Assembly (NCBI RefSeq): GCF_046119375.1 | Contig: NW_027362767.1 | Location: forward strand, 146,692,001-146,756,000 | Length of the DNA stretch: 64,000 nt | DNA from: Phyllobates terribilis | Taxonomy: Eukaryota | Reading direction: 5' to 3' | Part shown: one piece after another, positions 9,824-43,557 of the stretch | How positions within the stretch are numbered: position 1 is the first letter of the stretch | How the letters are laid out: every line of letters begins with the position of its first letter | The notes under the pieces: generated by a model | Seen by the model: the letters and a program-made list of their open reading frames with translations, nothing else | What the model was told of the DNA's origin: nothing | The model's database searches: none | Translations under genes and position numbers: made by a program

Positions 9824-10076
9824 CCCCGCCCCTTCCGGTGACGTCATGATAGAATGAAATAACTCCTCCCCCTCAAGAAATCAACTCCAATCTAGACGCT
9901 ACCCTCGGTGTGCACGTCCTCCATGTTGTCGGGGTCTAACAGCAATGTGTTCCTACGGGAATGTCTCCTCTAAAACGGCGGCGTTACAGGAGGTCTGCTG
10001 TAGCGCGTAGTCGCAGGGCTGTATTACGGGAAGCCGAGGAGGCCGAGCAGACTCCGCTCTCCGGTGTGAGGTGAGG
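9824..10076 (+). promoter_or_regulatory. Candidate promoter (GC box + ETS + CRE) and putative non-coding first exon
   Basis: CCCCGCCCC (9824-32), CTTCCGG (9832-38) and TGACGTCA (9839-46) are adjacent. CpG-rich sequence follows, then a donor-like GAG|GTGAGG at 10070/71. It could splice to the acceptor at 13143/44. No transcript evidence. Confidence 0.4.
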
Positions 10077-10140
10077 CCTGGGCTGTGTGCGGGATGGCTG
10101 GGCCGCAACCGCTTTCTTGCTCACGTTTACCTGTTTTTAA

Positions 10141-16165: not shown

Positions 16166-16197
<32 letters not shown>

Positions 16198-19100
16198 TGT
16201 CCCAATCTCTGATGATTCCCCCCCCCCCCCCCCCCCTCCCCCAGAAAGCACCAACCAATCCATTATCATCAAATGGAAAGAACATGGTACCACAACAAAC
16301 CAGCCAAGAGAGGGCACCACCAAAACTCAACCCCGGCAAGTAGGGCACGAATCAGAGAGGTAGCACAGAGACCAAAGGTAACCCCGAAAGAGCTGCAGAG
16401 TTCCCAAGCAGGGACTGGAGTATCTGTCCATACAACCACAATAAGCGGTACACGGTAGAGGTGACCTTTTTGGAAGAGTGAGCTGAAAAAAGCCTTTACT
16501 TGCACACAAATTGTAAGGCTCGTTTTGAGTTTACCAAAAGACATTTGGGACACTCCCAAAATGTATGGATCAAGGTGCTGTGGTCAGATGAGGCCAAAAT
16601 TTAACTTTTCAGCCACCAAGGTAAACGTTATTCATCACCCCAAGAACACCATTTTTAGGTAGCATTGACAGGGAAATTAGTTGAGTTGAGGGGAAGATGG
16701 ATGGTGCGAAACACAGGGACTTTCTTGAGTAAAACCTGTTTCAGTCTGTCAGTGATTTGAGACTGGGAAGTAGGTTCATCCTCCAAGACAATGACCCAAA
16801 ACATACTGCAAAAGTAGCACTCGAGTGGTTTAAGGGGAAACATATAAATGTTTTGCAGTGGTCGAGTCACAGCCCAGACCTTAATCCAATGGAGAATCTG
16901 TGGTCAGACTTGAAGATTGCTGTTCACCAGAGGAAACGTCTAACTTGAAGGAGCTGGAGAAGTTTTTTTTCTTGTGGAATGGGCAAAAATCCCAGTGGCA
17001 AGAAGTGGAAAGCTCATAGAGACTTATCCAAAGCGACTTGCAGACACAAAAGGAGGATCTACAAAGTACTGACTTTAGGGGGGTGAATAGTTATGCACAC
17101 TGAAGTTTTCTTTTGTCCTAATTGTTGTTTGCTTCACGATAAAAAGAAAACTAAAAATAAATAAATAAAATGTTCACAGTTGTCGGCATGTTCTTTACAT
17201 GAACTGATGCAAACCCTTAAAAAAATGCTAATGCAAGCCACTGTATATGATGCTTTAACCCCTTTACACCTCATGACATAGACCTCTATCATGGAGCGGT
17301 CCTCCTCCTTGCTCCTGGATTCTTGGGTGCTGATGGGTTGCCATGACATTCGGGGGCTGCTGAAGCCCACCCCATCACCCTTCTCTGCGATCTACATACT
17401 CCGGTGAAGCATAATTTGTACTATATACTGTAATACCAGTGTTGTAGAATACAGTTAAAAGGATCAATTGACCTCAGGTTCTCATCCTTACTGCAGACGA
17501 ATGAAACGCTGTTGATTACATAGGATGTTGCTGGGACAGTGCCACACCTGTCAGTGTGAGGTATTGCAGCTCAGCTCTAGTGAATTGAATGGAGCACAAT
17601 TGCAATAACCGCAAAACTGGTGTGGTGCAGTTTATGGAAGCAGTTATGTTTTTTTTTTTTTTTTTTTTTGTTTTTTTTTTAATGCTGTACAATCCTTAAA
17701 TCTCACAGACAATATTCCCTCTAAAAAAGAACCGGAAAAGAAAAAAGATGAAAAAAAAGAAGAAAAGGATGACAGCAAGGAGAATAGTAGATCAAGAAGA
17801 GCCCGGGACCGAGCAGAGAAGTATAGAGAGCTGCTAAAAACTCGAGAGCGAGATGCTGATCGTGACGATCGATCCAGGCGTCGTGACCGCGATTCCTCAT
17901 CTCGGCGTGACAGTAAAGACCTGCCGAAATCTCTGCTTCATGAGGACGATTTTGACGCCAGGAACATAAGTCAGGGCAGTAGCTCTGCATCTCGACTCAA
18001 CTTACTGAAAGATTCCTCCGCTGCTGACTCCAGATCAGATCGTAGGAAGCGGACCCGTTCTCCAGATCGCCGCAGTAAGGCGCATAGTAGTCAAAGATCC
18101 AGATACTTAGAGAGCTCTGGCGATATTGACGTGCGGTCCGTGTTGCCCTCGGGGGGCATCTCCTTTCGAGGTAAGCTCATCTGCTTTCTGAAATGTTTCT
18201 GTAAGTGGCCACTGGTCTCTGACGTTCTGTACATACTTGGTCACTATCTACTTTACTGATTACATGTATCCTTATAGAACTGAAGGCAGCCAACATAGGA
18301 CATCTATGCGGATTCAGGTTAGTGATGAGGATATGACATCAATGCAGGATGCTTCTGTTAACAATGTGCTAGGTTTACACATGGCTACAACTATTGGGCT
18401 TAGTGCAGTATTTGGTCTACATTTGTGGAGCCTGCATGTAATGCAGTGCAGTTCAGGCTGCTCGATCCTGTCTTGTCCTCTTTTCTTAGCTTAGTACATC
18501 ATCTGAATATACCATAAATGTCTGATGGGCTCAGGTGCCAGTAGCATTTTGCTTCCTGGTGCTGAAAATGGCAAGATTGCATTGAAAACGCAGCTCGGGG
18601 AGATAAGGATGCGCAGCAGGGGTCAAAAGAAAAGTGCCCATCCCACCTCTGGATCCCGCACTAATTTTAATAGTGGGCCCCATTTTGCTGCTGTGAATAG
18701 TTAGGTATCTCCTGTTCAGCTCCCTCCAATCACCTTTCTGAAAGTAGAAGAGCCATTTTCGATTTACCAAAAAAGCAAACTGATGGCCCAGCGCATGCGC
18801 TTCTCTAAGTGCTCACTTACAAGCCGTGAGGTGGGGACCACGAGACATCCCTTCATGGTAAAACTGCCCATCTCGCCTGTCTTGAGCATGGGGCCCCCAG
18901 TGCATGCGCAGCTCTCTCCATTCACTTCAACAGCGCATGTGCAGCAGCGTCTGTCCGGTCGGTCCACTTCCTTTGTAGGCATGGGGCCCCCCCATCTGGG
19001 ACCCATAACCCTCTGGAGAATGGGGCCCTGGGTTGAATGTAGAAATGGTTGTGCATGTGTTGCTCTTTCCATTCACCTCTGGAAATTCGGAAAATAAAAA

Positions 19101-22100
19101 GAGGAGTGAATGTACCCATGTGCAATGGATTAACCCTTTAATGTCATAACAACTCTCCCTAAGGCCACAGCCCCCACTATCAGTATTCGGTCAGTATTTT
19201 TTCTCAGGGATGGGAGCCAAAACCAGGAGTGGTTGATAAATGCAGAATTGGTGACTTGTTTCTATTATACCTTTTCTCTGATTGTTCCTCACCTGGTTTT
19301 GGCTCCCACTCCTGAGAAAAAATACTGACCAAATAGTGATAGTGGGGCCGTGGCCTAATATACAGCTCTGTTTAGAGGCAGCTGACATAATGCTTCCCCA
19401 TATAATGTATAAAATACTCATGGAGTTATTTCTTTTACAGCAGCGCCCATCTGCCCCTGAGTAAAAAGAAGAAGAAGACAGTAAGCGTCCAGGAGAAATC
19501 CTAAATAAACCACCAAAGCGGCGACACGTTCACCTTATTATTTGTTTTTCAGGACAAGGACAAGGACTCCGACAGCGATATGGAAGTGTGCAGCATGGTA
19601 TGTGACTGACGGCTGTACGGTATATGAAAGCCGACCTGTGTGTGTGTATAATATATATATATAAGCTGGTTTATATGTCGCCACAGTGTGACGTTTCTAA
19701 TATTTTCCTACAGGACTTCAGCGAATGTGAACCGGACGATTTCTGGTGTAACGAGGAGCTGTTTGATTTCCTGGTAAGGCCTCACCTTATATGAAGAGAT
19801 GCTGAGCTCTTTTATGCTAAAAATAAAGTTCAAAGTGAAAAAAAAAAAAAAAAAGTTTTTAAATGTTTAAAATAAAAAGCTCTTGTTATTGCCACCCTTC
19901 CATTATTTAAAAAATAAAGAAAAACAAACTTAATTTTTCATTTTACATCATTATATGGTAAAATGATTGTTGTCATTCGAGACTATAACTCGTCCTGCAA
20001 AAAGAAAAAAAAAAATCTCTGGAATGCGATGTCTGCTGAAAAATAACAAAGTTATGGGTCTTGGAATAGGTGGAGGAAGCACAAAAGCAAAAACTGTCCA
20101 CGGTTCTAGTACAGAAGTGCGGAGATTTATCTTCTGATTTTTCTTTCTCTTAGAAATGCTACCACGTCGGAGATGAAGAAGACGTCCAGTTCATCCTGGA
20201 GGCCATAAAGACCTTGTCTCATGCTTTGGTCCGTCACAAGACGCGGATGGAGGATCTGAAGAAGTGGATAGAGCAGGAGAAGCAGAAGCTGGAAGATGAG
20301 AAGAAGGTATTCTGTCCTGTGTGACCATCTCTGCACTTCCTGAATAGGGGGCCGGTCCTGTATAGCTGGTGCACCTCCCTCATCGCTCCTCACCGGCTTC
20401 ACGAGTAGCTGCAAGATCAATGTATGGTGGGTTGGGGCCCCCATCGATCAGCATTACAAAGGGCACCATATGGATGTGACCGTGCCTGGTGCCACCGCTC
20501 AACGCTGATGTAATACCAAGCATTGCCATAGCTAGATGTTGGGGCTGTGGCTAAAGCTTTGGGTCCCCAGTGCTAGCCTATAAGCCCAGGACAGCCCCGT
20601 TTCCTGCACTGAGGCACTTAAAGAAGTATTCCAGTGTACAAAACTTGTTCACTGGACAGGTAATAACTGTTCAGTCGGTGACAGATCCCCACAGATCGTC
20701 AGTACCATGGAGCCAGATGTCTCTTGGTTCTCCTCTGTCCCTGGAGGAGCTGAATGGAGCTGCTGGTCACACACGTGGTCCTGTATAACCACCTGTCTTC
20801 TATATTCTAGAAATTTCAAGAAATGAAGAAGCGGAAAGAAGATAAGATATCCAGCACAAAGATCAGCGGTAAGTACAGAGACTGGGCCCAGCGGGAGAGA
20901 CGCATGTTATAAGGGTGACTACGTTGCCAGAAAACTTGAGACCTTGCACAATCAAAAATAGGAGCGTTAAAGCGAACCTGTCATCAGGATTGTGCTAAGT
21001 AAACTACAGGCAGTGTTAGGTTGCCGCCGTTACACTGATTAAAATGATACCTGAGTTGATGAAATCCGTCCTGTGGTCGTTGTTTAATCTTTGATTGCGG
21101 TTTGGAAATAATTAGATTCTAGTGCTCCGGGGCGGCCTGTGGCGGGGCTTTATGTGGTGCTCTGGCATTATCTTCATCATTGTGATTTAAATGACAGGTC
21201 ACTGATCCTTCACTGACCTGCCTACTATGTTAAATACTGCTCTGTTCATATTGTAGTTTTTTATTTTATTTTATTTTTTTATTTAACTCCCACAAAATGG
21301 CGCATGTGCAGTAGCATGTATCACTTGCCGAAAGAGGCTACTGCGCATGCGCTGCCGCCATTTTGCTGGAGCCAAATTTATTTTTTTTTGCTCCAACATG
21401 CTGTTATTCTCCGCGAGCCCCGCCCGTTTGCCGATAGATGTAACTGCGCATGCGCCATTTTGCTGGAATTAAATTTTATTACTCTGTCGCCTCATTGGGG
21501 GACACAGGACGTTGGGTGTATGCTGCTGTCCACTAGGAGGCGACACTATGCATAATCTGAAAAAGATTAACTGTGGCTCCTCCCCTGCAGCATACACCCC
21601 TAGACGGCGTCAGCCATCTTCAGTTTTTGCTTAGTGTCGCAAGGAGGCACACCTCAGACCTTCACTCGTCCCTCGCTTCAGCACGGGATTACAGATGAAG
21701 AAAAGAGGGTCTCTTAAGAGACCCCCGGCATGGCTCCTTCCTCTGCCCCCTACTATGGGGTGCACAGTTGAAGTTGAGGTGGCGTAACCACCATGCTGCT
21801 CCTTCTCCGGCCCCTCGGGTCAAGCTCGAAGCTGAGAACCCCCCCCTCCTTCCCCAATTCCCTCGGTCTTGGTCCGAAGTTGAGGCGAGGACAAAGCCCC
21901 CTGACGGTGACAGCGGCACCCTCCCTAATCCCCCCTGGGGGTATTAGGTTGAGACACCATCAGGTAGGGCCTGGACGGCAGCATCTGCAGCTCTCACCAG
22001 CCAGCACACCGCAGCCGAGGACCAGCAGCAATACAGGAGCCCCAGTCTGTCTGTGGGATCCTGTAGGAGCTGGGGTGAGTGCAGGCAGCCATGGCACACA

Positions 22101-28100: not shown

Positions 28101-31100
28101 TGGTTGCAGAATAAATTTGTAGCCAATCTTATGCCTCCCTGATTGTATTACATGATGAATAAGTATCTGCCCGTACTTCTCAGCATTAAGGACTCCATTA
28201 ATCCTGGCCATATCCCCAACTCCATTTGCTGAACTTGCAGGACCCTCCAGCACGCTTCACTGTTCTTGCAGACCCTCATTATTGTGCTGCTTTCCAGCCA
28301 TTCCGTAACAAACTGCCTTCTATTACAGCCAAATATTTCACATTGTCACTCATCAGACCAGAGCACCTGCTGATGTTTTTCTGCTCCTGGTTCCTATCTT
28401 TTTGTGCATTGAGTCGCTTGGCCTCTTTTCGTGTTACAATTCCTCCATAAACACCACTTCTGGCCACACATCTCTGAACAGCAGCTGGTCCCACTGGTTG
28501 CTGCCAGTTCTGAGCTGATGGCAGTGCTGGACATCTTCCGATTTCGAAAGGGAAGTAAGCATTGTTTGCCTTTCATCTGCTGCACTAAATTACTTTGGCC
28601 GAATACTGATCTTCTTTCCTCCTCATTGCCCCTTTCTTGGTGTTTCTTCGAGATGAGCTTGAACAGCATATCTGGAAACACCTGTCTGCTGTGAAATCTT
28701 TTTTTCCTGGGAGACACCTTGCTGATGCAGTATAACTACCTTGTGTCTTGTTTGATGGCAAGACTGAGCACGGGTGTATGACCCAGGATATGAAACTGTC
28801 TTCCAAAACCTCAACTTTAGTAGAGTTTTTCTGTTCCTCACCCAGTTTAAAACCTTTTGCATAGTGGTTTCTGTTTCATTTATGACTGTGTTTCAACATA
28901 CATATGAAATCCTAGGAAAGCCCTGACTTTGTGCGAGAAGAATTGATGCTGTTTTGAAGTGAAAGGGCGTTGAGCAAATATTGATCTGATTTAGTTTTTC
29001 TCTTTTGTTCATTCACATAAGGTTTTTTGTTTTTTTTTGTTTTTTTTATCAATTAACAAAATGGAAACCCTTCTATTGTTAAAACCATTCTTACTTGGCA
29101 GTATTTTTTTCTGCCTAAAACATTTCCACTGTGCTGTGTATATCACAGTACCATCAGGGAAGCGTCTGACTCCAAATATATAATCATTTTCTACCGATCG
29201 GTTTTCTGTTTTTCTTTAAATTTTTGCAGAACCCGAGATGCTGAAGCTGTTTCATGAAGTGACAGGGTCCCACAAGAAGCACATCTCCGATACTGGAAAA
29301 GACACTCAAGCAGCCGCTCAGAAAACTTCTGGTGAGTGTATAGTATTAAGCTGTACATATACCGTATCCCCTTCCATGTTCTCCCAGTACTAATCTCCAG
29401 TAACTTACATTTTATATCATTTCTACAGCGGAGCAGGTCGCCCAGCAGCAGCTGCCTGTATCCGCTCAGAGACCTCCAGGTAACAATGTAGTAAGATAGG
29501 GGCACGCCAATCTATGGAGAAAAAATTGAAATTGCATAAAAATAGTAATGTGTGTTGGAGTTGATTCGATAACATGCAGCATATCGCACCTCTCTGTACA
29601 GAGGGGGTCTTTATTACTACAGTAGGGGGTGCAATATGCTGACAGTTTAAGGTCCCACTAAAATTCAGTTGTCCTTTTTTTTTTAAATCCCGTTAAAGGG
29701 GTCTTCTCATCCAGGTGAACACAAATACACAGCAGAATCCTTTTAATTCATGAAATAACCTTTAAATGGCTCACATTACAAGAATGTCGTAAGGCTCCAA
29801 GAAAGATGGTCAGCAGGGGTCTTTGTTGTGATTGTGGGGATGTGATATGTATGTAGAGAAGACGCTGACGGTTATGAGACCATCGGTCCTGCAGTTTCTC
29901 ACATCATTCCCATGACCGCAGCAGCCAATCTGTGGCATCAGCTGTAATGTTGGCATGCATGGCACATGATCACTGAGGTCACTGATTGGCTGCAGCGGTC
30001 ACATGAATGATGTGCAGCACATTACAGGTGCTAGGGAATTTTTGTATATTATCATGTTTCCTGTTATCATGAACATATTCTGAATCGCAGAAATCCCCTT
30101 TAAGGCCATGGCCCCACTATCAGTATTCGCTGAGTATTTTTACTCAGGAGTGGGAGACCAAACCAGGTGAGGAACAATCAGAGAAAAGGTATAATAGAAA
30201 CAAGTCACCAATTCTGCATTTATCACCCACTCCTGGTTTTGGCTCCCACTCCTGAGAAAAAATACTGACCGAATACTGATAGTGGGGCCGTGGCCATAGA
30301 TATATTTTACACCCTTCTTGCCACAGAAAAAGTTAACCAGCCTCCGCAGCTGACCAACTTTCTGAAGGCGCTGGTGGCCGGCATACCACCAGGGGTGCCA
30401 CCAGCCACTCAGAGACCTCCAGGTAAGGAAGGGATTCCTCTGGGGGGATACACAGATTCTTGTACAGATCTTACTGTAACACTGAGATTTTTTTAATCTG
30501 TCTGCAGCAGTCACTGCTCCGCAGCTCGTGCCCGGCTCCCAGAAGACGTTGGTGGCGGGTAAAGCACCAGTACAACATGCCGGCCAGAAACCTGCAGGTA
30601 ACAATATAGTAATGAAGGGATTTCTGTACATATACTGGGAACATACAGATCTCCCGATAACGCTGAGATTTTATACCGTGTGCAGCACAGAACGTCACCC
30701 CGACCCAGCAAACTCTCACGTCTCAGAAGGCACTAATGGCTGGCGTGGGGCAGCTACTTCAGCAGATTTTCCTGAGACCTCAAGGTAACTATATGGTCAT
30801 TTTCTCATGTATATCATTCACGGGGCAGATGAGAATGAGGGGTATGGCTGATGCCACTTGGCGCATACAAGTGTTAACTCCTACCAGCTATACTGGGCCG
30901 GCAGGTGCTGAGCAGAGCAATGGAATTCAGCATGTCTGATCCTTCTCTTCCCAACATCATCATCTCTGGAGGGCGGGGGCCCCCCTTGCGCGCGACGGTC
31001 AGGAGGGCGGGGGGCCCCCCTTGCGCGCGACGGTCCCCAGTGGGCCCGGGGCCAGACTAGGCCGGCATTGCCCTGTTGTGTATGGGGCCTTAGTCCTATG

Positions 31101-34100
31101 TTTCTGTTTCTCTTCTCATCCGTAGCCCCTGCTAATCATCCTAACCCAACACCCAGTCCTCAGTTTAACATCAGGGCTCCTGTGGGAGGAACCGGACCGG
31201 TCCAAGGAGCAGGTAATTGTATAATTATCCCCAGACCATAGAGTGTACATGCCAGTGTGACATTTATATACCGTCTCTTTATCTACAGTCACAGCATCTA
31301 CTACCTACCCAAGTAAGAATCCGCAGATCCCTGGCCCCAGATTTGATAATCCAAATCCCTCTAAGGAACAGCGGCCTCTCCCAGGACAAGGAGCCGGCAG
31401 GTATCCAGGTATGCTGCATCACGCTATTCCGAGGGCCGCGGTAGGAAGGGGTTCTTACTTCACCGCCCCCTGGTGTGCGTCAGTAGTTCTACCCTGCAGC
31501 TGACAAGGATGTTCCAGTAACATGCGGATTATGTTTTGGCAGCAGAGAACGTCGGCCCGTCCCATCCTGTGCCCGGTTACCAGCAGTTGCCGGGGTCCAG
31601 TACTGCACCAGTCCAACAAGCCGGTCCGGGAGCTCCAGGTAATTATCGTAGTAATGGTCTCAGATGGTTGCAATTGTAAGATCCAGTTTTGTAAATTGAA
31701 ATCCTCCCCCCTCCCTCATTACGATGCAGAGCTGCCGCTGCAGCGGCCCCTCTTGGACTTGGCCGGCAGGTTACATAATTTTTTATAAATGGCTGAGAAT
31801 GAGTTGGAAAAAAAAGATAAAGAAGTGATCCCCTCACCTACTGCCTGAGTCTGCCTGGACACACCAATACTGACCCATGTACATTTACGAGGATTACATC
31901 TGCTGTCATCTTTATAACAAATCTTGATGTTTTTGTTTTTTTTCCAGGCCCTACAACGCGTTATGCTCAGAATCCAGAGATTCCCGGGTCAAGATTTACT
32001 AATCAGGACCCCTCTAAGGAACGAAGACCTCCTTTTTTGGGACAAGTACCTGGTGGATATCCAGGTAATCTCACATCATGACTATTAATTCACACTAGCG
32101 ATGATGCTAGAACAGTTTGTAGGATCACAATATTGATTAGTGGAGTCAGATGTATGCTTCGCCTGTCTTCTGGGCATTATGCGGTACGCCCACTATTCCC
32201 TACACCTGACAGAGCAGGACCCCCCGATGACTGCCTTATGCCCTAGTAGGAGGTACAGACAGGTGGTCCAGTTGGACAATCTCTTGGTCTCATATTCTGC
32301 ACTTTGCTGATACCTCTTGCTCCCCCTAGTGGGTGACAATGGTAATACACCACTACGTACAGGAATCGTTTCCACATGTAGTTTTATTTCTGCAATTTGA
32401 CAGTAACATCAATCTCTTTATACACTTCCAGCTCCCATGAATCCCAGCCAGCCTCAACAACAAGCTGCTCCAAGCCCTCAAGGTAGCATTATATTATAAT
32501 GGTAGCAGACTAGTAATGGTGCCATTGTAAAGTGACGTGCCGCCCCCTGATGTGTAAGGGGCAGGACCCCCACAGCTTTTCTAGTCTGCCACATATTAAC
32601 TGTATACATGTTGCACCTGCATTGGACATTGTATATATTTTTCCTCCATAGACGCTTCTATTCGCTTTAACCAAAATCCGCGTTCCGGCTTTGACAGGGG
32701 ACCTGTGGATGGAGCAGGAGCAGGTACGGTGGAAGGAACGACCACTGCTCCATTAATTTCCTGAGGGGCTGCCTGATAAAGTGCAGCGCTGTACTGCTCT
32801 CATCAATGCCTTAGATAGTCCATTCAGAAGGGGGATCTGAGAGCGCTGTCTTTGTGATCGGTTGGGTCCCTGTAGTCCGACCCCAGCCATCACCTGTCTT
32901 AGGTTGTGCATTGTTATAGTGGGCCATCCCTTTAAGGTGCTATGGTGTTTGTGTCTATTGCAGAATATGGCTGCAGCCATCCATTCCCATGCACACGTAG
33001 AAGTATGTCACGTCCTCCCATCGTCTCGTAACTTCTGTGTTTTTGTGGTGCAGGTTCTGAAACGCGCTTCAGTCAAAATCAGGGACCTCCTGCATCCAGG
33101 TTTGATAATACGAATCCCCCAAAGGACCCCAAGTCTCTGATGGGACAAGCAGCGAGCAGATATCCAGGTATCCATGGTGGGTGGGGATAGATGCTCCCCA
33201 TTTGTACCACAGGGATGGTGATGATATGTGATCGGCCTCTGTTATAATTCTGTCATTCTTCGATTAGAGTCGGAGGGTCGTTATAACCAGGATGACCTGT
33301 ATTCCGGTAGCTGGACTGACAACTCGGGAGCTCGCAATAAGGCAGGACCACCATTAGGAGCAGGTGATTACTGATAGTCGCGGTCAGGACATGCCAGATG
33401 ATCCGGTATATCTCATGGTCGTATTTGGGATCTGTATTCCCATCATACTGTGCCTCCATATTGTGGTATGTCGTTATGGTGGCATATGTAGAGTATACAT
33501 GTAGCCATACACCTGACTCTTACTTTTATTAAAATCGCTTGGATGCTGCAGTAAATGCCGACTATAGCATGTAAGGGTGTTAAACAACCAAGTGACGGCA
33601 TCTGCACGGCTCTGCTGCATCATCGCTTAAACTACCTCACAAAGTGCAACATAGTCTCCGATTGGCTATTTTATTTGGACACCTGCATAGTTGGCTACTA
33701 AATATAGTGGGTGACCATATGGCCAAGCAGGGTGACGGTGAACAGCAGCCAACAATGTGCAGGGTTTTTCTGGCACCACTGTTATTACGTCTTACTGGTG
33801 TGGCAGTGCTTGGACCTCCGCTGATGGGAACATCACTCCTATAACTCCTGCCGCGTGAGAACGTCACATGCGCCCGTATTTTTTCCTCCATAGACGCTGC
33901 CAATCGTTTTAACCAAAATCCGCCTTCCCGCTTTGATGCCAGGGGACCTGTGGATGGTGCAGGAGCCGGACCAGGTATGTGTGTATATCTATCGATAGAT
34001 AGGTAATCCGTGATAGATATATATACATACATGAAGACAGCACTCCTCTTTAGAAAAAAATCAAATAAGTGATTTTAATGGCCCATAAGGGCTAAATGTG

Positions 34101-37100
34101 ACATTTCGGCTCCGAGTGTGAGCCTTTTTCAAGCAGAGCAGACCAGAGCAGCTTTTTATAGATCCAATCATTCATAGATTCATTATACAATACAGTGCTG
34201 TGTAAAGTCGTGTAGACCATTATATTTCCATACAGTTATCAGATTACAGTGCCATAAAGTGTGTGTTATTGTGAACATATAACATGATTACACACAATAC
34301 ATTAGAAACGTTTTGATTAGTATATACAGGTGTAAATACTTTAAATGGCAGGACTCACCCCATTAAATGATTAAGCCATCGCACCCAAACGGCAGCGTGT
34401 ATATTACGCAGCCCATGTCAGCGTGTTACACCAGGCAGTGACTTAATCGGGCAGCACGTCCCTGCCCTCGGAGCCATCTTTGAAAGAGTCAGTACCTCAA
34501 TGCGCAGACTCCAGGCGCGTCATAGGACTCCCGCACCATCTTGGATAAGGTCAACACCTTAATCCAAACTGCGCATGCGCCATAAAGCTCAATGATGTAA
34601 TGGATGTCCATTACAAAGGCTGTAAGTAAGCTGATAAGAACGCTCCCATGCACATGTTCTGAACATCACCATTTAAAGGAGCCCAAAAGCATAATATTTA
34701 GGTGATTTTGGTACAAGGGTAGTTTGGCAAGCACACCACTATTAGACAAGGTAACATCCCCCCATTTGCTGTGGCTGGTAAACCTATATCAACAATGATT
34801 TTGCAGAGCCATACTCCCCGTTTAGGCGCCTACTGCTCAACCCAGTCCTTTAATGGAATTTAAAGCCCGCATATATCCAGGACCCAATTATTTCAGCATA
34901 AAAACCTTTAATAACACTAGTATCACAGAAAGAACAATTAAACATCAGAGTGTTATTTATGGGTAACAACAAAGATGTGTATTTATTTATAAAAAAAAAT
35001 ATTATATTAGGTGGTAATATTGATGTGACCCGTGCCATAAATATATATCTATATTTCCAATCTAGAAGGAAAGGAAAAAAAAAAAAGATAGAGACAATTA
35101 GTATCCATGTTAAAAATCCTATCTAGACTATTTTGAACGAGAAGAACAATCCAAGGTATATCAAAGGAGACACAACATCATTAGGCTGCCAAATTGATTT
35201 TATATTCAACATTCAGTCCCTTAGGGCGCAAAGTATCAAGTCTATGAATTGATTGTAACTCCTTAATTTTTAACAATTTTACACAATCCCCACCTCTTCT
35301 CAAGGGTGGTACATGATCAATAATCCTGAATTTTACATTTTTCACTATGGCCACATTCGACAAAATGTTTTGAGACCGGGAAATCCATTTTTTTCTTATC
35401 TATGATGATTAAGCCTAGTTTTTAAATCCCATGTCGTTTTCCCCACATAAAACAAATTGCTGCGACATTGCAATAAATATATAACATATTCCGAATCACA
35501 TGTTAAATTATTATTATAATTATTTATTATAGCACCATTTGTTCCATGGCGCTTTACATGTGAAAGGGGTATACATAGCACAAACAATTACAATAAATGT
35601 TGAACAATACAAGTCGGCGACTGGTACAGGAGGAGCGAGGACCCTGCCCGCGAGGGCTCACAATCTACATAGGAAGGCTGAGGATACAGTAGGTGAGGGT
35701 AGAGCTGGTCGTGGAGCGGTGGTTACTGCAGGTTGTAAGCTTGTCGGAAGATGTGGTTCTTCAGGTTCCTTTTGAAGGTTTCAACAGTAGGCGAGAGTCT
35801 GATATGTTGGGGTATAGAGTTCCAGAGTAGGGGGGATGCACGGGAGAAATCTTGTATGTGATTGTGGGAAGAGGAGATGAGAGGAAAGTAGAGAAGGAAA
35901 TCTTGTGAGGATTGGAGGTTGCGTGCAGTGTTGTAGCGGGAGACTACAGTACAGACCAAAAGTTTGGACACAGCTTCTCATTTAAAGATTTTTCTGTATT
36001 TTCATGACTGAAAATTGTACATTCACACTGAAGGCATCAAAACTATGAATTAACACATGTGGAATTATATACTTAACAAAAAAGTGTGAAACAACTGACA
36101 ATATGTCCTATATTCTAGGTTCTTCAAAGTAGCCACCTTTTGCTTTGATGACTGCTTTGCACACTCTTGGCATTCTCTTGATGAGCTTCAAGAGGTAGTC
36201 ACCGGAAATGGTCTTCCAACAATCTTGAAGGAGTTCCCAGAGATGCTTAGCACTTGTTGACCCTTTTGCCTTCACTCTGCGGTCCAGCTCACCCCAAACC
36301 ATCTCGATTGGGTTCAGGTCTGGTGACTGTGGAGGCCAGGTCATCTGGCGTAGCACCCTATCACTCTCCTTCTTGGTCAAACAGCCCTTACACAGCCTGG
36401 AGGTGTGTTTGGGGTCATTGTCCTGTTGAAAAATAAATGATGGTCCAACTAAACACAAACCAGATGGAATAGCATGCCGCTGCAAGATGCTGTGGTAGCC
36501 ATGCTGGTTCAGTATGCCTTCAATTTTGAATAAATCCCCAACAGTGTCACCAGCAAAACACCCCCACACCATCACACCTCCTCCTCCATGCTTCACGGTG
36601 GGAACCAGGCATGTAGAGTCCATCCGTTCACCTTTTCTGTGTCGCACAAAGACACGGTGGTTGGAACCAAAGATCTCAAATTTGGACTCCTCAGACCAAA
36701 GCACAGATTTCCACTGGTCTAATGTCCATTCCTTGTGTTCTTTAGCACAAACAAGTCTCTTCTGCTTGTTGCCTGTCCTTAGCAGTGGTTTCCTAGCAGC
36801 TATTTTACCATGAAGGCCTGCTGCACAAAGTCTCCTCTTAACAGTTGTTGTAGAGATGTGTCTGCTGCTAGAACTCTGTGTGGCATTGACCTGGTCTCTA
36901 ATCTGAGCTGCTGTTAACCTGCGATTTCTGAGGCTGGTGACTCGGATAAACTTATCCTCAGAAGCAGAGGTGACTCTTGGTCTTCCTTTCCTGGGGCGGT
37001 CCTCATGTGAGCCAGTTTCTTTGTAGCGCTTGATGGTTTTTGCAACTGCACTTGGGGACACTTTCAAAGTTTTCCCAATTTTTCGCACTGACTGACCTTC

Positions 37101-40100
37101 ATTTCTTAAAGTAATGATGGCCACTCGTTTTTCTTTACTTAGCTGCTTTTTTCTTGCCATAATACAAATTCTAACAGTCTATTCAGTAGGACTATCAGCT
37201 GTGTATCCACCTGACTTCTGCACAACACAACTGATGGTCCCAACCCCATTTATAAGGCAAGAAATCCCACTTATTAACCTGACAGGGCACACCTGTGAAG
37301 TGAAGACCATTTCCGGTGACTACATCTTGAAGCTCATCAAGAGAATGCCAAGAGTGTGCAAAGCAGTCATCAAAGCAAAAGGTGGCTACTTTGAAGAACC
37401 TGGAATATAAGACATATTTTCAGTTGTTTCACACTTTTTTGTTAAGTATATAATTCCACATGTGTTAATTCATAGTTTTGATGCCTTCAGTGTGAATGTA
37501 CAAATTTCATAGTCATGAAAATACAGAAAAATCTTTAAATGAGAAGGTGTGTCCAAACTTTTGGTCTGTACTGTAGGTCACAGATGTATGGAGGAGACAG
37601 GTTGTGGATGGCTTTGTATGGCAAGGTTAGGGTTTTGAACTGGAGTCTCTGGGCAATGGGGAGCCAGTGAAGGGATTGACAGAGAGGAGAAGCGGGGAGT
37701 AGCGGGGGGACAGGTGGATTAGTCGAGCAGCAGAGTTTAGGATAGATTGGAGGGGTGCAAGAGTGTTAGAGGGGAGGCCACAAAGCAGGAGGTTGCAGTA
37801 GTCAAGGCGGGAGGTGATGAGGGCAGCACTAGTGTTTTTGCAGATTCATGGTTGAGGAATGTGCAGATCCAGGAGATATTTTTGAGTCCGAGTCGGCAGG
37901 AAGTGGAAAGGGCTTGGATATGTGGTTTGAAGGAGAGATCAGAGTCCAGGGTTACCCCGAGGCACCGAGCTTGTGGGACTGGGGAGAGTGAACAGCCATT
38001 GACGTTGATAAATAGGTCAGATGGGGGGGTTGAGTGAGACGGTGGAAAGATGATGAATTCAGTTTTATCCATGTTAAGTTTTAGAAATCTGTCAGAGAAG
38101 AAGGATGAAATAGCGGACAGACATTGTGGGATTCTGGTTAGTAAGGAGGAGATATCTGGTCCAGAGAGGTAGATCTGTGTGTCATCAGGATAGAGGTGAT
38201 ACTGAAAGCCATGAGACTCTATGAGCTGTCCCAGGCCGAAGGTGTAGATGGAGAAGAGCAGGGGTCCTAGAACTGAACCTTGGGGGACACCGACAGATAG
38301 TGGACGAGATGAGGAGGTGGTGTGTGAGTGGGAGACACTGAATGTCTGGTCTGTTAAATATAAGGAGATCCAAGATAGGGCCAAGTCTTTGATGATGAGA
38401 GTCAGTAGTAAGAGGGAATGGTCCACTGTGTCAAAGGCATTTGACAGGTCCAGGAGGAGGAGGACAGAGTAGTGTCACTTGGATTTGGTAGTTAGTAGGC
38501 CGTTGGTGACTTTAGTCAGGGCAGTTTCAGTGGAGTGATGCGGTCGGAAGCCAGATTATAAGCGGTCAAATAGGGAGCAGGAGGAGAGGTGGGAGGACAG
38601 TTCAAAATGGACATGTTCCAGCAGTTTTGAGGCGTAAGGAAGAAGTGATATGGGGCTATAGCTAGACGGAGAGGATGGGTCCAGGGGACGGCTTTTTGAG
38701 GATGGGTGTGATCGAGGCATGTTTGAAGCATGAGGGGAAGACACCGGTTGTTAGTGACAGGTTGAAAAGGTGGGTTAGGATTGGGATGAAGACTATGATG
38801 AGGTTAGGGATGAGGTGGGACGGGATTGGGTCAAGTTTCCAGGTGGTGGTGTGATTTGGAGAGTAAAGAGGAAAGTTGATTGTCCGTAATGGTGGAGAAG
38901 CTGGTTTTGGAGGAGGAGGGTTGAGTAGATATGAGGAGGGGCTGTGGGGACTTTAGGCAAAAGCTTTGTCCGATGGTGTCAATCTTCTGCTTGAAGAATG
39001 ATGCAAAGTCTTAGGCTGAGATGAGATAATAATGATTAATTGAAATTTTTGTTTCCGGAATCAGGATGTGCAAAAACATTTACCTTTCAAAAGATTAGTA
39101 CAATTAACACAATTTAGGCAAGGATAACACCCAGTCCTTTTTGCTCCTGTCAATGATGATGGTTTCAAACTCTTAAGAGGTCCTAGATCCGCATGTACAA
39201 GCCTGTCCGTAAAATTCCTAGCACGTTTAAATGAAAATAGTGGAGGATTACTATAATGTGTAACTTCAGGGATACAATTGTCTAACATTTGCCAATGCTT
39301 TTTAATAGTTCAAGCAGTTTTGCCACTCTTTTCACAATATGTCGTACATACTGGTATCCTGTTTAATGCCCTATTCCTATCAGGCCCAGCCGCCAAAAGA
39401 CTTCCACAATCTAAGGCGTTGACTTTATCTTCCCATTTTTTCAGGAGTTTTTTTTGTATAGTTCCTCTGTAAAAATTTCTAAATGATAATTTTATAATTT
39501 TGCTTTAACAGTGTCTCATCACTTACAATTCTTTTAATTCGGAGTAACTGGCTGTAAGGCAACGATTCAATCATTTTTTTTTTACTCGAAATTGAACCAG
39601 AGTACATTTTGTAGCATCATCATCCATATGGTTTAAAAACTCATGAAACAGATTCAGTTCAAGAGTTGTACCAGTCCACAGGAGGAAGACGTCGTCTATG
39701 TATCGCCACCACCTGAGCACATGGGCAAAGTGGGGTGACACATAGACGAGGGCCTCCTCCAACATGGACATCATTAAATTGGCATAAGCTGGTGCTATAC
39801 TGGCACCCATTGCTGTTCCGCGGCTTTGGACATAATAATCACTACCAAAAAGAAAGTAATTATTATTAAGTAATAACTCAAGTAGTTCAATAATAAAGTC
39901 TATACTTTTCAATGTATATTCCACATGCGTAAGCTTTTTGCTGACAGCCAAAATGCCTCTATTATGTTGGATAGAAGCATACAATGATACCACATCGATC
40001 GAGAGAACGTCACATGCTCCTGTATTTTTTTCCTCCATAGACACTGCCAATCGTTTTAACCAAAATCCGCCTCCCCGCTTTGATGCCAGGGGGGGACCTG

Positions 40101-43100
40101 TGGAGGGTGCACGAGCCGGACCAGGTATGTGTGTCTCTCTATCTATCTATATAGATGTGTGCGTACATGTTAGATTAATATAGGCCTACCCCACCCGAAC
40201 CATCTGAATATGGGGATGACCTCATTGCTTGTTGTGGTCCCTCTGTACCTCCTTGTGCCCCCAATGTGGTATAAGGTATTGGCATCACTGTAGACCTAGA
40301 GTTGCTGTATAGGCTGCATGGATGTTTCGGAGCCTCGTCTACTGTCGCTTTAATATTTTTCTACAGGTCCCATAACGCATTTCAGTCAGACTCAGCAAGT
40401 TCCTGTCTCCAGATTTGACCACCCGAATGCCTCTAAGGATCAGAGGTCTATCGTCGGGCAAACAGCGGGCAGATATCTAGGTATCTCACACATATCTGAG
40501 ATTTTTATTAGCCATATCCTTAAAGGCTTGGTGCCAACTTGGATGGGTGATAACTTATTGCTCGCTGGCGGTCTGGCCACTGGGACACAATCTCTTACTG
40601 CGCAGTCGGTGATTATATATGATTACTGTGAGACTTGACCGGCCTTGGTTATGATTTTATCATTTTTCACGTGCAGAGTCGGATGGTCGTTACAGCCAGA
40701 ATGAGCCGTATCCCGGGTCCCGAACTGACAACAATGGATCCTACGATAACACAAGACCACCATTAGGAGCAGGTAATTACTGACTGTTAGGATTGAAGAC
40801 CAAGGGTTTTTCACTGGCTAGCTGGGTCCTTTAAAAATAATCTGATCACATAGTGTCCCTGGTTTTCCTAGTGATCAGCTGTAATCTGTGGATAAACGTG
40901 GCAGTGTTAAAAATCCCTGCAGCGCCTGCAGAGGGGAAATGAAGTATTACAGTTTTCATTCATATCAATGAACTTTCCGCGTAATGTAGGACAGGAAGTG
41001 TCGTCAGGAGCGAGACACGTACCAAGAGATGATGAACAGAGGACCCCTTCTGTTAACTCAATCTGTGTTTTTGTTTTTGTACAGGCTCTGAGATGCGTTT
41101 CAGTCAGAATTCGCAAAGTTCTGCTTCTAGATTTGACAATCCAAATCCTGGTAATCAACAAAAATCCTTCATGGGACAAGAAGCAGACAGATATTCAGGT
41201 ATCCGGATTCACAGCAACACTGCTCAGTACTGCATTTTCCAAAGAATTGGTGGGGATGGTGGCGCTGAAATGGCTGTGAAGTCTAATGGTGCAGGGTATA
41301 GCACTTGGAGTGGCGGGGGTGAGGCGCAGCAACGAACAATATCCATGGTACAGCAATAGATCAGGGAGATATAAAAACATTTAGAGGTTCATGTTGGTGC
41401 GCTGACAGAACAGTTAGTGAGGATGCGGTAACTAAAAATAAATGCCTTCTTATTTTAGGGTTTTCAAAAATCACTGAGGTCAGATTCCAATTTTGGGAAT
41501 GGGTTATAAGTGATCTTTTTATAATATTTTCCTTCAGAGAGAAAAGATGTTTATTTTTAATTACCACATCCTCACTAATTCTACTGGCAGCGCACCAACA
41601 TAACCTTTAATGTTTTCAATACTGCGTTATAATATATTCCATGCTGTTGCTGTTTTTTATTAAGTGTTTTATCGCACCCGAGTGATGGAGTCACAGCTAT
41701 ACTGCTCAATAATGTCCTCCATGCTGCTGTTTTCTAGTAAAAGCAGCAGCAGGTCTGGGCTCACAGTAACACTGCTCAGTACTGTTGTAGAACAAGTACC
41801 ATGACGATGTTACTTCTAAACAGGTGCTACGTAGAGACTGCAGAGCAGCTATGACTCAGGATATCTATAGCTAGCCTCCACCCACTAGCTCAGAGACAGC
41901 TATAATTCTTTCATTCTTTGTGTACAGAGGTGGACGATCATTATAACCAGGATGACTCGTATCCCGGTACCTGGACTGAAAACAGTGGATCCCTCGATAA
42001 GACACGAGCACCATTAGGACCAGGTGATTACTGACCATCAGGATCAGAGAACCGACAGATTTATTGCTTTAGTGGTCGTCAAGGACTTCAATACTGATAG
42101 CCAAGCTATAGTATAGGTCAGCTGTATCAGATTTATTGGGGTCCTACACCCGTAACCACCACTGATCTGTTACAAAGTCCTGCGGCTGTTGAATGTGCAC
42201 AGTGTAAAGAGCCGGATCACAACAGCGCCATACACTGTGTAGTGGCCGTTCACGGTACTGACATTTTAGCTTTTATTTACTTCAATACGAGCTGATCTTC
42301 AGTACCTGAATACAGCCACAATATGGCGAATACGAACTTACTTCCCCCCCTTACTTTTCCTTTTGCATGGAGCGTACTTTACAGTTTCCTTCCAGTAGCT
42401 GTGGAGCTTAGGATCAGCTGAGGGTGCCGAATATTAATGACCTATTCTAGTTTCAGGTCATAGATGTCCTAGTAAACCACTTTAAGCTAGAACCTCTACT
42501 TCCTGAATATGTTGCCCCTTTTCTGTATCTCCATGTTTATTGTGGTATGAAGCATCGCATGCTGTTGTGTTGCTTCCAAGTATAATGGGGGCAACATAGG
42601 ACGGCACAGGAAGTCCTACGCACCAGTAGCCCTTCGATGGAGGGATTGGGTCACTGTAGTGAAGTGATTCCAGGTAAACCTATCAGAAATCCATTGATCC
42701 ATCCGTGTAGGTCTATGGGCGATCCCCGACACCATTCCATATTGATGGACTGTGGCTGTATATATTTCCTTTGCTGGTGATATGACATGTAGTATGCTTT
42801 TATCTTCATAGATCAACGAAAGGATTATAAGCCGATGTCGTGGAATAGCGGACCACCGTCCGGAAACCAGGGCTTCTATAATGAGGCGCGACCAGTTACC
42901 GGGATGGGAACGGGAAGATATGACGGTATTATTAACATGTACTATTATTGTGTGCATGATTTAAGGCTTTGGTGTCCGTGTTATTCACTGTGGGTGGATT
43001 GTGGATATTGTGGGGTCTGTATGATGGTGGGAGACATATAAATAATCACTTACTTATTTTGTCACAGACCAGTACACCCAAAACCAGTATCAGTCCCAGT

Positions 43101-43557
43101 ACAGTAGCAGTGGGTCGTATGGGGCTGGAACGGACAGACCTCCTGGTATGTATCTGACTTATCAGATTTGCATGGGGAGAGGAGTAAGCTGCTGACACAA
43201 CCCTTCACTGTGGCCACTTTTCTTGCAATCTGTGCCACACTATTAATTAAACATCCCCAATGTCTTTGGTGGAAAAACTCCTTTAACTGCAGGAAAGATT
43301 TTGGGGTTTTGGATTAGGAGGTTCAGACATCACATGTGATAGGTTTTGTGTGATAATAAGTGATAGATTTATATTAGTTCTTAAGTCTTGTATTTCGTTA
43401 TTACTTTACAGGACCACAAGGTGGCCAGCCTCAGCCTGCTGCTTCTACCGGGTACCCATCAGACGGGCGTCCAGGCACATGGCCCAGCCAGGCTCCTGCT
43501 AAACGCGGCGTTTACCCTGCTGGCATCCTCAAAAACAGGACAGCCAATCCGCCCTAA
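13151..43557 (+). CDS. 35-exon host gene, ~1169 aa: two C2H2 (matrin/U1-like) zinc fingers, RS/RD-rich region, coiled coil, modular Pro/Gly/Gln/Asn low-complexity tail (uncharacterised)
   Basis: Coding exons deduced by hand: 13151-13192, 13309-13383, 13813-13903, 14243-14379, 14570-14692, 15191-15260, 17709-18170, 18278-18317, 19441-19480, 19553-19597, 19714-19773, 20154-20306, 20811-20868, 29230-29331, 29429-29479, 30327-30422, 30508-30597, 30686-30784, 31126-31212, 31289-31408, 31543-31638, 31948-32064, 32432-32482, 32652-32723, 33054-33167, 33268-33363, 33894-33974, 40041-40124, 40367-40480, 40677-40772, 41085-41198, 41928-42023, 42812-42925, 43068-43145, 43412-43557. All have a pyrimidine tract with AG acceptor and a GT donor. 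Phases match, and the total is 3510 nt with no internal stop. Confidence 0.88.
15342..17243 (+). mobile_element. Degenerate Tc1 element in intron 6
   Basis: TA|CAGTGGCTTGCGAAAGTATTCAC start and GCAAGCCACTG|TA end. Transposase remnants: [26 protein letters not shown] (16098), [22 protein letters not shown]. Many frameshifts. Confidence 0.88.
15516..15790. mobile_element. hAT-type MITE nested in the Tc1
   Basis: TIR CAGAGCTGTGGAGTCA / TGACTCCACAGCCCTG; exact 8-bp TSD AAAAATTG at 15508-15515 and 15791-15798. Confidence 0.9.
17709..18170 (+). CDS. Exon 7: K/E-rich then RS/RD-rich segment
   Basis: 462-nt phase 1-1 exon reading [65 protein letters not shown]; acceptor CACAG, donor GTAAGC. Confidence 0.9.
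19163..19355. mobile_element. ~190-bp palindromic MITE, copy 1
   Basis: GGCCAC.GCCCC.ACTATCAGTATT.. / ..AATAGTGATAGTGGGGCCGTGGCC with TAA on both flanks; homologous to 30104-30295. Confidence 0.85.
21793..24211 (+). pseudogene. DIRS ORF1 (gag-like), fragmented
   Basis: Position in the element; C-terminal fragment [40 protein letters not shown], typical of vertebrate DIRS ORF1. Confidence 0.7.
24200..25940 (+). pseudogene. DIRS reverse transcriptase / RNase H / methyltransferase-like ORF, frameshifted
   Basis: PPVGGRL start; [17 protein letters not shown]; [14 protein letters not shown]; PYLDDLL; RNase H motifs [19 protein letters not shown] and [15 protein letters not shown]; later YIFPP. 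The motifs lie in different frames. Confidence 0.93.
25928..27084 (+). pseudogene. DIRS tyrosine recombinase, frameshifted
   Basis: [17 protein letters not shown] and TFTKHY catalytic motifs; ORF split at ~26330. Confidence 0.93.
27860..29137 (-). mobile_element. Old degenerate Tc1 remnant
   Basis: Minus-strand fragment [36 protein letters not shown]; decayed TIR-like CTGCCTAAAACATTTCCACTGTGCTG near 29111-29137. Confidence 0.6.
29230..43145 (+). CDS. Array of 21 symmetric phase 1-1 exons (exons 14-34) encoding the low-complexity tail
   Basis: Exon lengths are 102, 51, 96, 90, 99, 87, 120, 96, 117, 51, 72, 114, 96, 81, 84, 114, 96, 114, 96, 114 and 78 nt. All are multiples of 3 and all end on the first base (G) of a codon. 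Confidence 0.88.
30104..30295. mobile_element. ~190-bp palindromic MITE, copy 2, inverted relative to 19163
   Basis: Same TIRs as copy 1; the central segment is the reverse complement of copy 1 (GGTATAATAGAAACAAGTCACCAATTCTGC). Confidence 0.85.
35947..37573 (-). mobile_element. Tc1-related DD38E (Intruder-type) transposon, full length
   Basis: TIR CAGTACAGACCAAAAGTTTGGACAC of ~270 bp with TA on both flanks. Confidence 0.95.
36108..37160 (-). CDS. Transposase, 350 aa, uninterrupted ORF, DD38E spacing, first catalytic Asp read as Glu
   Basis: Paired-like HTH, GRPR, WSEESK (normally WSDES), [17 protein letters not shown]; 38 residues between D and E. Confidence 0.92.
   Translation of the reverse strand: MARKKQLSKEKRVAIITLRNEGQSVRKIGKTLKVSPSAVAKTIKRYKETGSHEDRPRKGRPRVTSASEDKFIRVTSLRNRRLTAAQIRDQVNATQSSSSRHISTTTVKRRLCAAGLHGKIAARKPLLRTGNKQKRLVCAKEHKEWTLDQWKSVLWSEESKFEIFGSNHRVFVRHRKGERMDSTCLVPTVKHGGGGVMVWGCFAGDTVGDLFKIEGILNQHGYHSILQRHAIPSGLCLVGPSFIFQQDNDPKHTSRLCKGCLTKKESDRVLRQMTWPPQSPDLNPIEMVWGELDRRVKAKGSTSAKHLWELLQDCWKTISGDYLLKLIKRMPRVCKAVIKAKGGYFEEPRI

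Follow-up and report, generated by a model that had tools for sequence, protein, structure and literature searches.

A lineage-variable array of duplicated phase 1-1 exons encodes the predicted disordered tail of an uncharacterized zinc-finger protein in hyloid frogs

The frog Phyllobates terribilis carries, in a stretch of 64,000 nucleotides (nt) of its genome (NCBI RefSeq assembly GCF_046119375.1, contig NW_027362767.1, positions 146,692,001 to 146,756,000 of the forward strand; hereafter the window, to which all coordinates refer), an unnamed gene whose 3' half consists of a long succession of small, symmetric and in large part mutually related exons. A model that saw only the letters of the sequence had proposed (hereafter the original prediction) that these exons form a modular low-complexity domain whose length can be tuned by exon duplication in evolution and by alternative splicing in the cell. 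Here, we examine this array and conclude, with a probability of roughly three in four, that the 3' half is real coding sequence, that it encodes a disordered tail derived from duplicated phase 1-1 exons, that the array varies from lineage to lineage and that the tail is probably a multivalent interaction module.

The gene was recognised through its own repeats. A profile made from the translations of five exons of one recurrent class (class B, see below) was searched against 1.84 billion representative proteins at a threshold of E 0.001, and the six proteins that passed were five frog clusters and one unrelated repetitive protein from a metagenome. The top match was XP_073495505, the "uncharacterized protein isoform X2" of Phyllobates terribilis itself, whose cluster also includes the isoforms X1 (XP_073495504, 1208 residues) and X3 (1181 residues). 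Aligned to the plus strand of the window, X1 extends from 9961 to 43557 in 36 coding exons with no mismatch; the gene is annotated in RefSeq and remains unnamed. The annotation has a coding exon (9961-10070) upstream of those originally predicted, so that exon n of the first reading is RefSeq coding exon n+1; the RefSeq numbering is used throughout. The remark that no description of this gene was known agrees with our own survey, in which all the homologues are called "uncharacterized protein" except one misnamed as collagen-like, and in which, as far as we checked, no paper on the gene was found. Its exons are as follows, the single letters in quotation marks naming cassette types.

Coding exons 1-14, 9961..20868, plus strand: N-terminal part of the protein, from the exact mapping of X1; mixed intron phases.
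Exon 15 (exon 14 of the original prediction), 29230..29331, plus strand: 102 nt, unique "E" cassette; its orthologue is skipped in Eleutherodactylus coqui X4.
Exon 16, 29429..29479, plus strand: 51 nt, Q-rich mini-exon with the 3' end CAGAGACCTCCAG.
Exon 17, 30327..30422, plus strand: 96 nt, "D" type (NQPPQ..KALVAG), with the same 13-nt end as exon 16.
Exon 18, 30508..30597, plus strand: 90 nt, "D" type.
Exon 19, 30686..30784, plus strand: 99 nt, "D" type, weak helix tendency.
Exon 20, 31126..31212, plus strand: 87 nt, diverged A-like cassette.
Exon 21, 31289..31408, plus strand: 120 nt, class B.
Exon 22, 31543..31638, plus strand: 96 nt, "D"-like; NAGNAG tandem acceptor at 31543/31546.
Exon 23, 31948..32064, plus strand: 117 nt, class B.
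Exon 24, 32432..32482, plus strand: 51 nt, Q-rich mini-exon.
Exon 25, 32652..32723, plus strand: 72 nt, class A.
Exon 26, 33054..33167, plus strand: 114 nt, class B; possible alternative donor 9 nt downstream (33176).
Exon 27, 33268..33363, plus strand: 96 nt, class C, followed by GTGATTACTGA.
Exon 28, 33894..33974, plus strand: 81 nt, class A; missing from RefSeq isoform X3.
Exon 29, 40041..40124, plus strand: 84 nt, class A; recent duplicate of exon 28.
Exon 30, 40367..40480, plus strand: 114 nt, class B.
Exon 31, 40677..40772, plus strand: 96 nt, class C, followed by GTAATTACTGA.
Exon 32, 41085..41198, plus strand: 114 nt, class B.
Exon 33, 41928..42023, plus strand: 96 nt, class C, followed by GTGATTACTGA; RefSeq isoforms of Dendrobates tinctorius and Ranitomeya variabilis skip its orthologue.
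Exon 34, 42812..42925, plus strand: 114 nt, loosely B-like "Y" cassette, present in all homologues but Bufo.
Exon 35, 43068..43145, plus strand: 78 nt, Q/Y/S-rich "Z" cassette, present in all full-length homologues.
Exon 36, 43412..43557, plus strand: last coding exon, entered in phase 1, with the conserved C-terminal end and the stop codon.

The exact mapping of X1 bears out the predicted symmetry in full: exons 15-35 (29230-43145) are 21 exons that are without exception phase 1-1, a multiple of three in length (51-120 nt) and bounded by GT-AG splice sites. The phases of introns 1-13 are mixed (2, 0, 0, 1, 0, 0, 1, 1, 2, 0, 0, 0 and 0, in that order); then come, with introns 14-35, 22 phase-1 introns in a row. 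At a phase-1 frequency of about 0.3, a figure that we assume, the probability of such a run is about 3e-12, and it cannot be a matter of chance. Moreover, the last base of each of exons 14-35, which is the first base of every split codon, is a G. Since all the split codons begin with G, any junction encodes Ala, Asp, Glu, Gly or Val and none can create a stop; together with the shared phase, this means that the duplication, loss or skipping of any unit keeps the reading frame open. The exons had been called freely skippable, and in the arithmetic sense that any subset of them keeps the frame this is correct, but the label does not describe their observed usage. The array comprises 21 successive symmetric exons that share one phase, where at least three are taken as the mark of such a run. 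For a frog whose chromosome-scale record measures 470 Mb, its introns (15-35) are very short: all but one of the 21 measure 76-847 nt, the exception being intron 28, which is filled with mobile elements.

The exons of the array are not merely similar in format; many of them are demonstrably related. Three recurrent classes had been predicted, and all three are real: class A (exons 25, 28 and 29; 72, 81 and 84 nt), class B (exons 21, 23, 26, 30 and 32; 120, 117, 114, 114 and 114 nt) and class C (exons 27, 31 and 33; 96 nt each), arranged, as had been stated, in the order A-B-C-A-A-B-C-B-C. Measured against composition-preserving shuffles, the peptide similarity within these classes (11 exons) gives z-scores of 8.5-21. 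Exon 20 belongs loosely to class A and exon 34 loosely to class B, each with z of about 6, and a weak link between classes B and C appears in the same scores. The mutual similarity of eight other exons (15-19, 22, 24 and 35) is weak (z 2.6-4.7). Thus 13-14 of the 21 exons are demonstrable paralogues, and the description of all 21 as duplicated was an overstatement.

The relationship is also visible in the DNA, where the repeat families D1-D4 are consistent with the exon classes and a 40-nt family, D5, connects the 3' ends and intron starts of exons 15, 16, 17, 18 and 24. The motif GT(G/A)ATTACTGA directly follows all three class C exons, exactly as predicted, and these three occurrences, with about 0.01 expected, are the only ones in the window; the string AGGTRATTACTGA that follows the same exons is likewise absent elsewhere in the window. 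The 11 nt past the donor sites of exons 27, 31 and 33 are almost identical. The common end CAGAGACCTCCAG that had been pointed out in exons 16 and 17 (13 nt) terminates exactly these two exons and occurs nowhere else. Within classes the identity of the intron flanks is 0.5-0.8 over the 20 nt that adjoin the exon and no better than background (about 0.25) farther out; hence, the intron edges are indeed paralogous, as had been claimed, over an extent of just some 20 nt. Because the paralogous unit is always an exon with its splice-proximal intron, the duplication must have taken place at the level of DNA. A search of all six-frame open reading frames with hidden Markov models (HMMs) of the cassettes found no extra or decayed copies in the window.

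What the array encodes is a region of unusual composition. In exons 20-35, which all the composition figures cover, proline and glycine make up 26% of the residues, glutamine and asparagine 16%, serine and threonine 15%, aromatic residues 8.4%, arginine 7.2% and aliphatic residues 7%; cysteine is absent, and the charged residues (R, K, D and E) amount to about 19%, the net charge being near zero. Between the 43 aromatic residues the mean gap is 11.6, with a coefficient of variation of 0.55, an evenness that none of 5000 random placements equalled and that is an automatic result of the repetition of the cassettes; 20 of the 43 are directly preceded by arginine. In an AlphaFold2 model of the tail the mean predicted local distance difference test score (pLDDT) is 33, with 701 of 704 residues below 50 and only two short helical tendencies, both in D-type exons; the tail, some 700 residues long, is accordingly a predicted disordered region. 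The original prediction had spoken of a prion-like domain with a sticker-and-spacer grammar. The second part of this description holds, in that the tail has even aromatics, polar or Gly/Pro spacers and arginine as partner, as well as predicted disorder; the first is partly at odds with the composition, glutamine and asparagine being too few and charged residues too many for a classical Q/N-rich prion domain. An aromatic/arginine low-complexity region fits the composition better, and the tail may self-associate.

The same features allow another interpretation, which we consider possible though doubtful: each cassette could supply short linear motifs to a single folded partner (such as a domain with specificity for RFxQNP...RFD or GRY), the copy number of the cassettes then tuning the avidity of the binding and not self-association or phase separation. 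This would account for the pattern within the cassettes, where a few positions are invariant amid a variable remainder, and for a charged fraction that is high for a self-associating prion-like domain; moreover, according to Schad, Kalmar and Tompa (2013; PMC3632108), short motifs repeated in tandem are common in symmetric exons that encode disorder. Nonetheless, neither a partner nor a known class of motif was identified, and contact motifs made of aromatic residues and arginine fit the composition equally well.

The exon number and order were compared among amphibians, as had been suggested; all these cross-species comparisons were made at the protein level. Searches with the whole protein and with its N-terminal domain retrieved homologues only from Dendrobates, Ranitomeya (two species), Dendropsophus, Eleutherodactylus, Rhinoderma, Leptodactylus and Bufo (two species), to which the class B profile added partial models from Hyla sarda. 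No homologue outside the hyloid frogs was found in word-based searches with the whole protein, the N-terminal domain or a shortened query that admitted proteins of 287-912 residues. In Bufo gargarizans there are two near-identical loci on one contig (LOC122922091 and LOC122922016), each with 7-8 predicted isoforms that drop 1-5 cassettes, which indicates that in this lineage the whole gene has also been duplicated. The longest isoform of each of 12 hyloid loci was converted into a string of cassettes by means of local HMMs built on the cassette types of Phyllobates:

Phyllobates terribilis: E Q D D D A B D B Q A B C A A B C B C Y Z.
Ranitomeya variabilis: the Phyllobates string with an extra D-B pair and one A instead of A A.
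Ranitomeya imitator: the Ranitomeya variabilis string with one more B.
Dendrobates tinctorius: five B-C pairs at a place occupied by one in Phyllobates.
Dendropsophus ebraccatus: 10 A, 8 B and 8 C.
Eleutherodactylus coqui: E D D D A B B A B C Y Z.
Bufo (three loci): ten units, each of 31 residues and B-like, with neither A nor C.

The string differs in all 12 loci, and the number of A, B and C cassettes ranges from 6 in Eleutherodactylus to 26 in Dendropsophus. The start of the tail (E, D) and its end (Y, Z and the last exon) are largely conserved across the homologues: Z is found in every full-length one, Y is missing in Bufo and E was undetected in Dendropsophus and Rhinoderma. The middle of the tail is, as read from these strings, a birth-and-death array. 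For each cassette of Phyllobates the nearest relative belongs to another dendrobatid, whereas most of the Dendropsophus and Rhinoderma cassettes are closest to copies in their own species and the five B-C pairs of Dendrobates tinctorius are 95-100% identical to one another; all three of these genera have near-identical copies peculiar to their lineage. Among the dendrobatids the tail, or its orthologous cassettes, is 73-76% identical, versus 87-91% for the zinc-finger domain. These protein comparisons show that the array expanded and contracted independently in different frog lineages, and the strings point to multi-exon units amplified in tandem, namely B-C in Dendrobates and, in Ranitomeya, D-B. 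Of the two ways in which the length of the tail was supposed to be tuned, exon duplication in evolution is thus well founded, with an array that is anything but invariant and with species-specific bursts of copies.

The second way, alternative splicing, stands on different ground. Predicted RefSeq transcript models from eight loci in seven species differ from one another in whole cassettes of the tail, from one up to five of them together, apart from the start of the protein in Bufo, some single-residue differences and one of three residues. In Phyllobates the sole variant at the level of cassettes is X3, without exon 28 (27 residues). The orthologue of exon 33 (32 residues) is missing from Dendrobates tinctorius X4 and from Ranitomeya variabilis X3, the Dendropsophus isoforms are shorter by 17, 34 or 50 residues and those of Eleutherodactylus coqui by 30 or 38, Rhinoderma X2 lacks one C+B pair (70 residues), and in Bufo the losses amount to 1, 2, 3 or 5 of the 31-residue units, with two isoforms that differ at their start. 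These models suggest that single cassettes or short runs of them are sometimes skipped. The claim of a length set by splicing is thus partly supported, by predicted transcripts only, among which whole cassettes come and go. A mutually exclusive use of exons 28 and 29 was rejected, for X1 and X2 contain both and X3 simply lacks exon 28.

Smaller variations were also seen. The one-residue difference between X1 and X2 comes from the NAGNAG acceptor of exon 22 (31543/31546), and isoforms of Dendrobates and Ranitomeya show the same one-alanine variant. At exon 26 a second GT, 9 nt past the donor (33167/33176), would add the residues GIH, which are the very three that differ between the Dendrobates isoforms X1 and X3.

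Among class B pairs in the window the ratio of nonsynonymous to synonymous divergence (dN/dS) is 0.16-0.48 and dS, at 0.65-1.75, is near saturation; for the class A pairs 25/28 and 25/29 the ratio is 0.22 and 0.54. These values point to B and A copies that are old and have been kept under purifying selection. The comparison of exons 28 and 29, with four nonsynonymous and no synonymous changes and one codon insertion or deletion, is not significant, the estimated p from site counts being about 0.3 under neutrality.

Several observations weigh against our interpretation. For the class C pairs dN/dS is 1.0-3.2, from small counts that are not significant, and part of the tail may for this reason be weakly constrained. 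Exons 27 and 33 differ by two synonymous versus 19 nonsynonymous changes, and the excess in class C could be due to relaxed constraint, to diversifying change or to constrained synonymous sites. The isoforms are automatic models in which reads may be misplaced among near-identical exons, as in Bufo and Dendrobates; the alignment behind the structure model of the tail is shallow, with just four sequences; and the restriction to hyloid frogs is based on one exhaustive search, for which the B cassette was the query, and on word-based searches that started from the N-terminal part. The variation in copy number could itself be neutral.

This last idea, in its full form, holds that the tail is a neutrally drifting repeat in which gain and loss are tolerated by disorder, the number of copies is without adaptive significance and the isoforms with skipped cassettes are splicing noise or artefacts of annotation. 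We think it rather unlikely. It draws on the breadth of the copy-number variation, which extends even to the two Ranitomeya species, on the class C ratios at or above 1, and on the many near-identical cassettes of Bufo and Dendrobates, where the mapping of spliced reads is least reliable. It does not sit well with the purifying selection on the B and A cassettes, with the retention of all the Phyllobates cassettes as 1:1 orthologues across the dendrobatids or with introns free of decayed copies. Moreover, the last C exon, only 66-78% identical to its nearest C relative, is skipped at the orthologous position in two species, and the common skipping of so diverged an exon would be hard to explain by misplaced reads.

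We return to the tail as a multivalent module. Repeated duplication, at the DNA level, of units of an exon with its splice sites (the three related types A, B and C) generated at least 13 of the tail exons. The cassettes so multiplied would supply repeated R-F/Y, F-D and G-R-Y contact motifs in P/G/Q/N/S spacers, so that the tail would probably act as a multivalent interaction module whose valency came mainly from the number of cassettes. It would then associate with itself or bind a partner avidly, the nucleus being the most likely place.

In the N-terminal part of the protein, two zinc fingers of the U1/matrin type (zf-met; C-x2-C...H-x5-H) lie in exons 3 and 5, within a domain (exons 2-7) that is 59-93% identical across the hyloid frogs; exon 8 (17709-18170) is rich in RS/RD and K/E, and exons 11-14 encode a coiled coil together with an acidic motif that is invariant. 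The idea that the region is collagen-like or some other structural repeat of the extracellular space, suggested by the high glycine and proline content and by the name that RefSeq automatically gave the Dendropsophus protein ("collagen alpha-1(I) chain-like", a misnomer), was rejected and keeps practically no likelihood: no run of at least four G-X-Y triplets occurs in the Phyllobates, Dendropsophus or Bufo proteins, the N-terminus does not resemble a signal peptide by eye (no predictor was used), and the zinc fingers with an RS-like region are typical of nuclear proteins.

The wider affinities of this N-terminal part are faint. Pfam scans of whole proteins and of sub-regions gave zf-met marginally below the cut-off and otherwise nothing meaningful. 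Membership of the AKAP95 family (AKAP8, AKAP8L and ZNF326; PF04988) was considered: PF04988 did not appear among the hits even with E allowed up to 10, and for want of a match to this model the protein is not assigned to the family. A structure model of the N-terminal part, of moderate quality (pLDDT 61, predicted template modelling score 0.63), gave weak fold matches to ZNF326, AKAP8L and AKAP8 (E 0.014-0.5, template modelling score, TM, about 0.2); its best local fold match (residues 40-215 of X2, exons 2-7) was Drosophila CG7065, with 24% identity and a probability of 0.54. An Atlas feature search returned zf-met clusters, AKAP95 family clusters (similarity 0.88-0.91) and the zebrafish protein si:ch211-13c6.2. 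Sequence searches of the PDB with the zinc-finger exons and with an N-terminal profile yielded only generic C2H2 or U1-type fingers, at E > 0.001.

At the very start of the gene, RefSeq exon 1 (9961-10070) places 39 extra residues (MSPLKRRRYRR...) before the MADKDKEG start. The other dendrobatid homologues begin at this second methionine, and the extension may be 5' untranslated region read as coding sequence. Some 300 nt separate the annotated start codon (9961) from the end of an upstream C-rich 52-nt minisatellite of about 17 copies (8776-9658), which is the cause of the strong negative GC skew at 8-10 kb; a 13-nt repeat is present in 12 copies in intron 1 (10217-10369).

Besides tandem amplification, a second mode of array growth is visible in the window itself, at the pair of exons 28 and 29. 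Over 147 nt, the blocks 33854-33996 and 40000-40146 share 90.5% identity. Each contains its exon (28 or 29) plus adjoining intron, about 40 nt upstream and 22 nt downstream, and the pair directly brackets 6.0 kb (33997-39999) of intron 28, whose parts are as follows.

Intron 28, 33975..40040, plus strand: 6066 nt, mostly transposable elements on the minus strand.
GIY-YIG motif, 35399-35587, minus strand, in intron 28.
Complete nested Tc1 element, 35944-37576, minus strand, with inverted ends of 275 nt.
Second reverse-transcriptase fragment, 37740-38426, minus strand, in intron 28.
Reverse-transcriptase fragment, 39574-40050, minus strand, abutting the right duplicate block.

The reverse-transcriptase fragment and the GIY-YIG motif suggest a Penelope-like element, and the protein models of the other dendrobatids have a single A cassette at this position. 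The layout has the geometry of a long target-site duplication; a small tandem duplication of the block, with the elements invading later, is an equal alternative. A scan of the region 28-45 kb with Rfam detected no hammerhead and no other family.

One could assemble all these elements into a single and far more specific account: a nuclear U1-type zinc-finger/RS protein found only in hyloid frogs, perhaps a distant relative of the fly TEsup/CG7065 or of AKAP95, whose cassette array is an evolvable and splice-adjustable module of self-association valency, and in which exon 29 arose from a target-site duplication of about 145 nt at the insertion of a Penelope-like retroelement, a new exon and a new intron being gained at once while the older exon 28 is skipped in X3. 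As a whole, this account would have to be called improbable.

The inverted ends of the Tc1/mariner element at 35944-37576 are 97% identical, its transposase reading frame of 350 residues (minus strand, 36108-37160) is intact, and the element is 97% identical to a partial copy at 63508-64000; this suggests that the family is young and possibly active. Further Tc1-like reading frames lie near 2100-3017, 5031-5617, 16071-17083, 52474-54500 and 56432-57493. A large retroelement on the plus strand (22958-27200) occupies much of the 8.4-kb intron 14, and one of its long reading frames (24058-25779) matches the RNase H domain of reverse transcriptases.

The value of the locus is that it displays, in one place, how a disordered region can grow and shrink without breakage of the gene: a single intron phase, split codons that begin with G, tiny introns and a conservation that is confined to 20 nt next to the splice sites. 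The close poison-frog relatives, whose cassette numbers differ on otherwise orthologous arrays, constitute a natural series of valency variants; if it is true that the tail self-associates or binds a partner through its repeats, such a series could be used to test how the number of repeats relates to the strength of interaction.

How does this array compare with systems that have already been described? [quoted passage not shown] The frog gene resembles the genes described there in its same-phase symmetric run, the homology of its exons, the disorder and short motifs that these encode and a link with alternative splicing, here through predicted models. It differs in that the survey is a statistical study of human genes, whereas ours is an unnamed gene found only in hyloid frogs; its run of 21 exons and their turnover between close species are more extreme than selected examples from that survey. 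The PEVK segment of titin is likewise encoded by short repetitive exons, whose number varies by species, in which transposable elements have been implicated and whose splicing sets the length of the segment (PMC6469411). The two arrays have in common many short repetitive exons for a disordered segment and exon duplication and loss across species, but the titin segment is a mechanical spring of the sarcomere, composed of P, E, V and K, while the frog tail is composed of P, G, Q, N and S with arginine-aromatic motifs and accompanies zinc fingers and an RS-like region.

Among proteins of the nucleus and of RNA metabolism the parallels are of another kind. FUS and hnRNPA1 are RNA-binding proteins with low-complexity domains of aromatic and arginine stickers and spacers. 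AKAP95 forms condensates (bioRxiv 10.1101/536839). The frog tail shares with these three proteins evenly placed aromatics, arginine as the likely partner residue, spacers that are polar or rich in Gly/Pro and a scarcity of aliphatic residues; with only 16% Q+N and about 19% charged residues, it is unlike classical prion-like domains. The resemblance of its zinc-finger domain to the two-finger region of the AKAP95 family is weak (fold E 0.01 or more, TM about 0.2, no Pfam match). CG7065, to which a 2025 preprint gave the name TEsup-2, is a cofactor of Piwi-mediated transposon silencing in which a U1-like finger domain is followed by an SR-rich region (bioRxiv 10.64898/2025.12.16.694471). The frog protein has its U1-like zinc fingers and RS-rich region in the same order, the match being weak, and has in addition a cassette tail with which CG7065 is not described; on the strength of these features a relationship is a lead only. 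The current understanding of exon duplication and of disordered proteins is left unchanged. The principle of the exon array is already published (PMC3632108, PMC6469411), and what is new is a clean and rather extreme case of it in an unstudied gene of the hyloid frogs.

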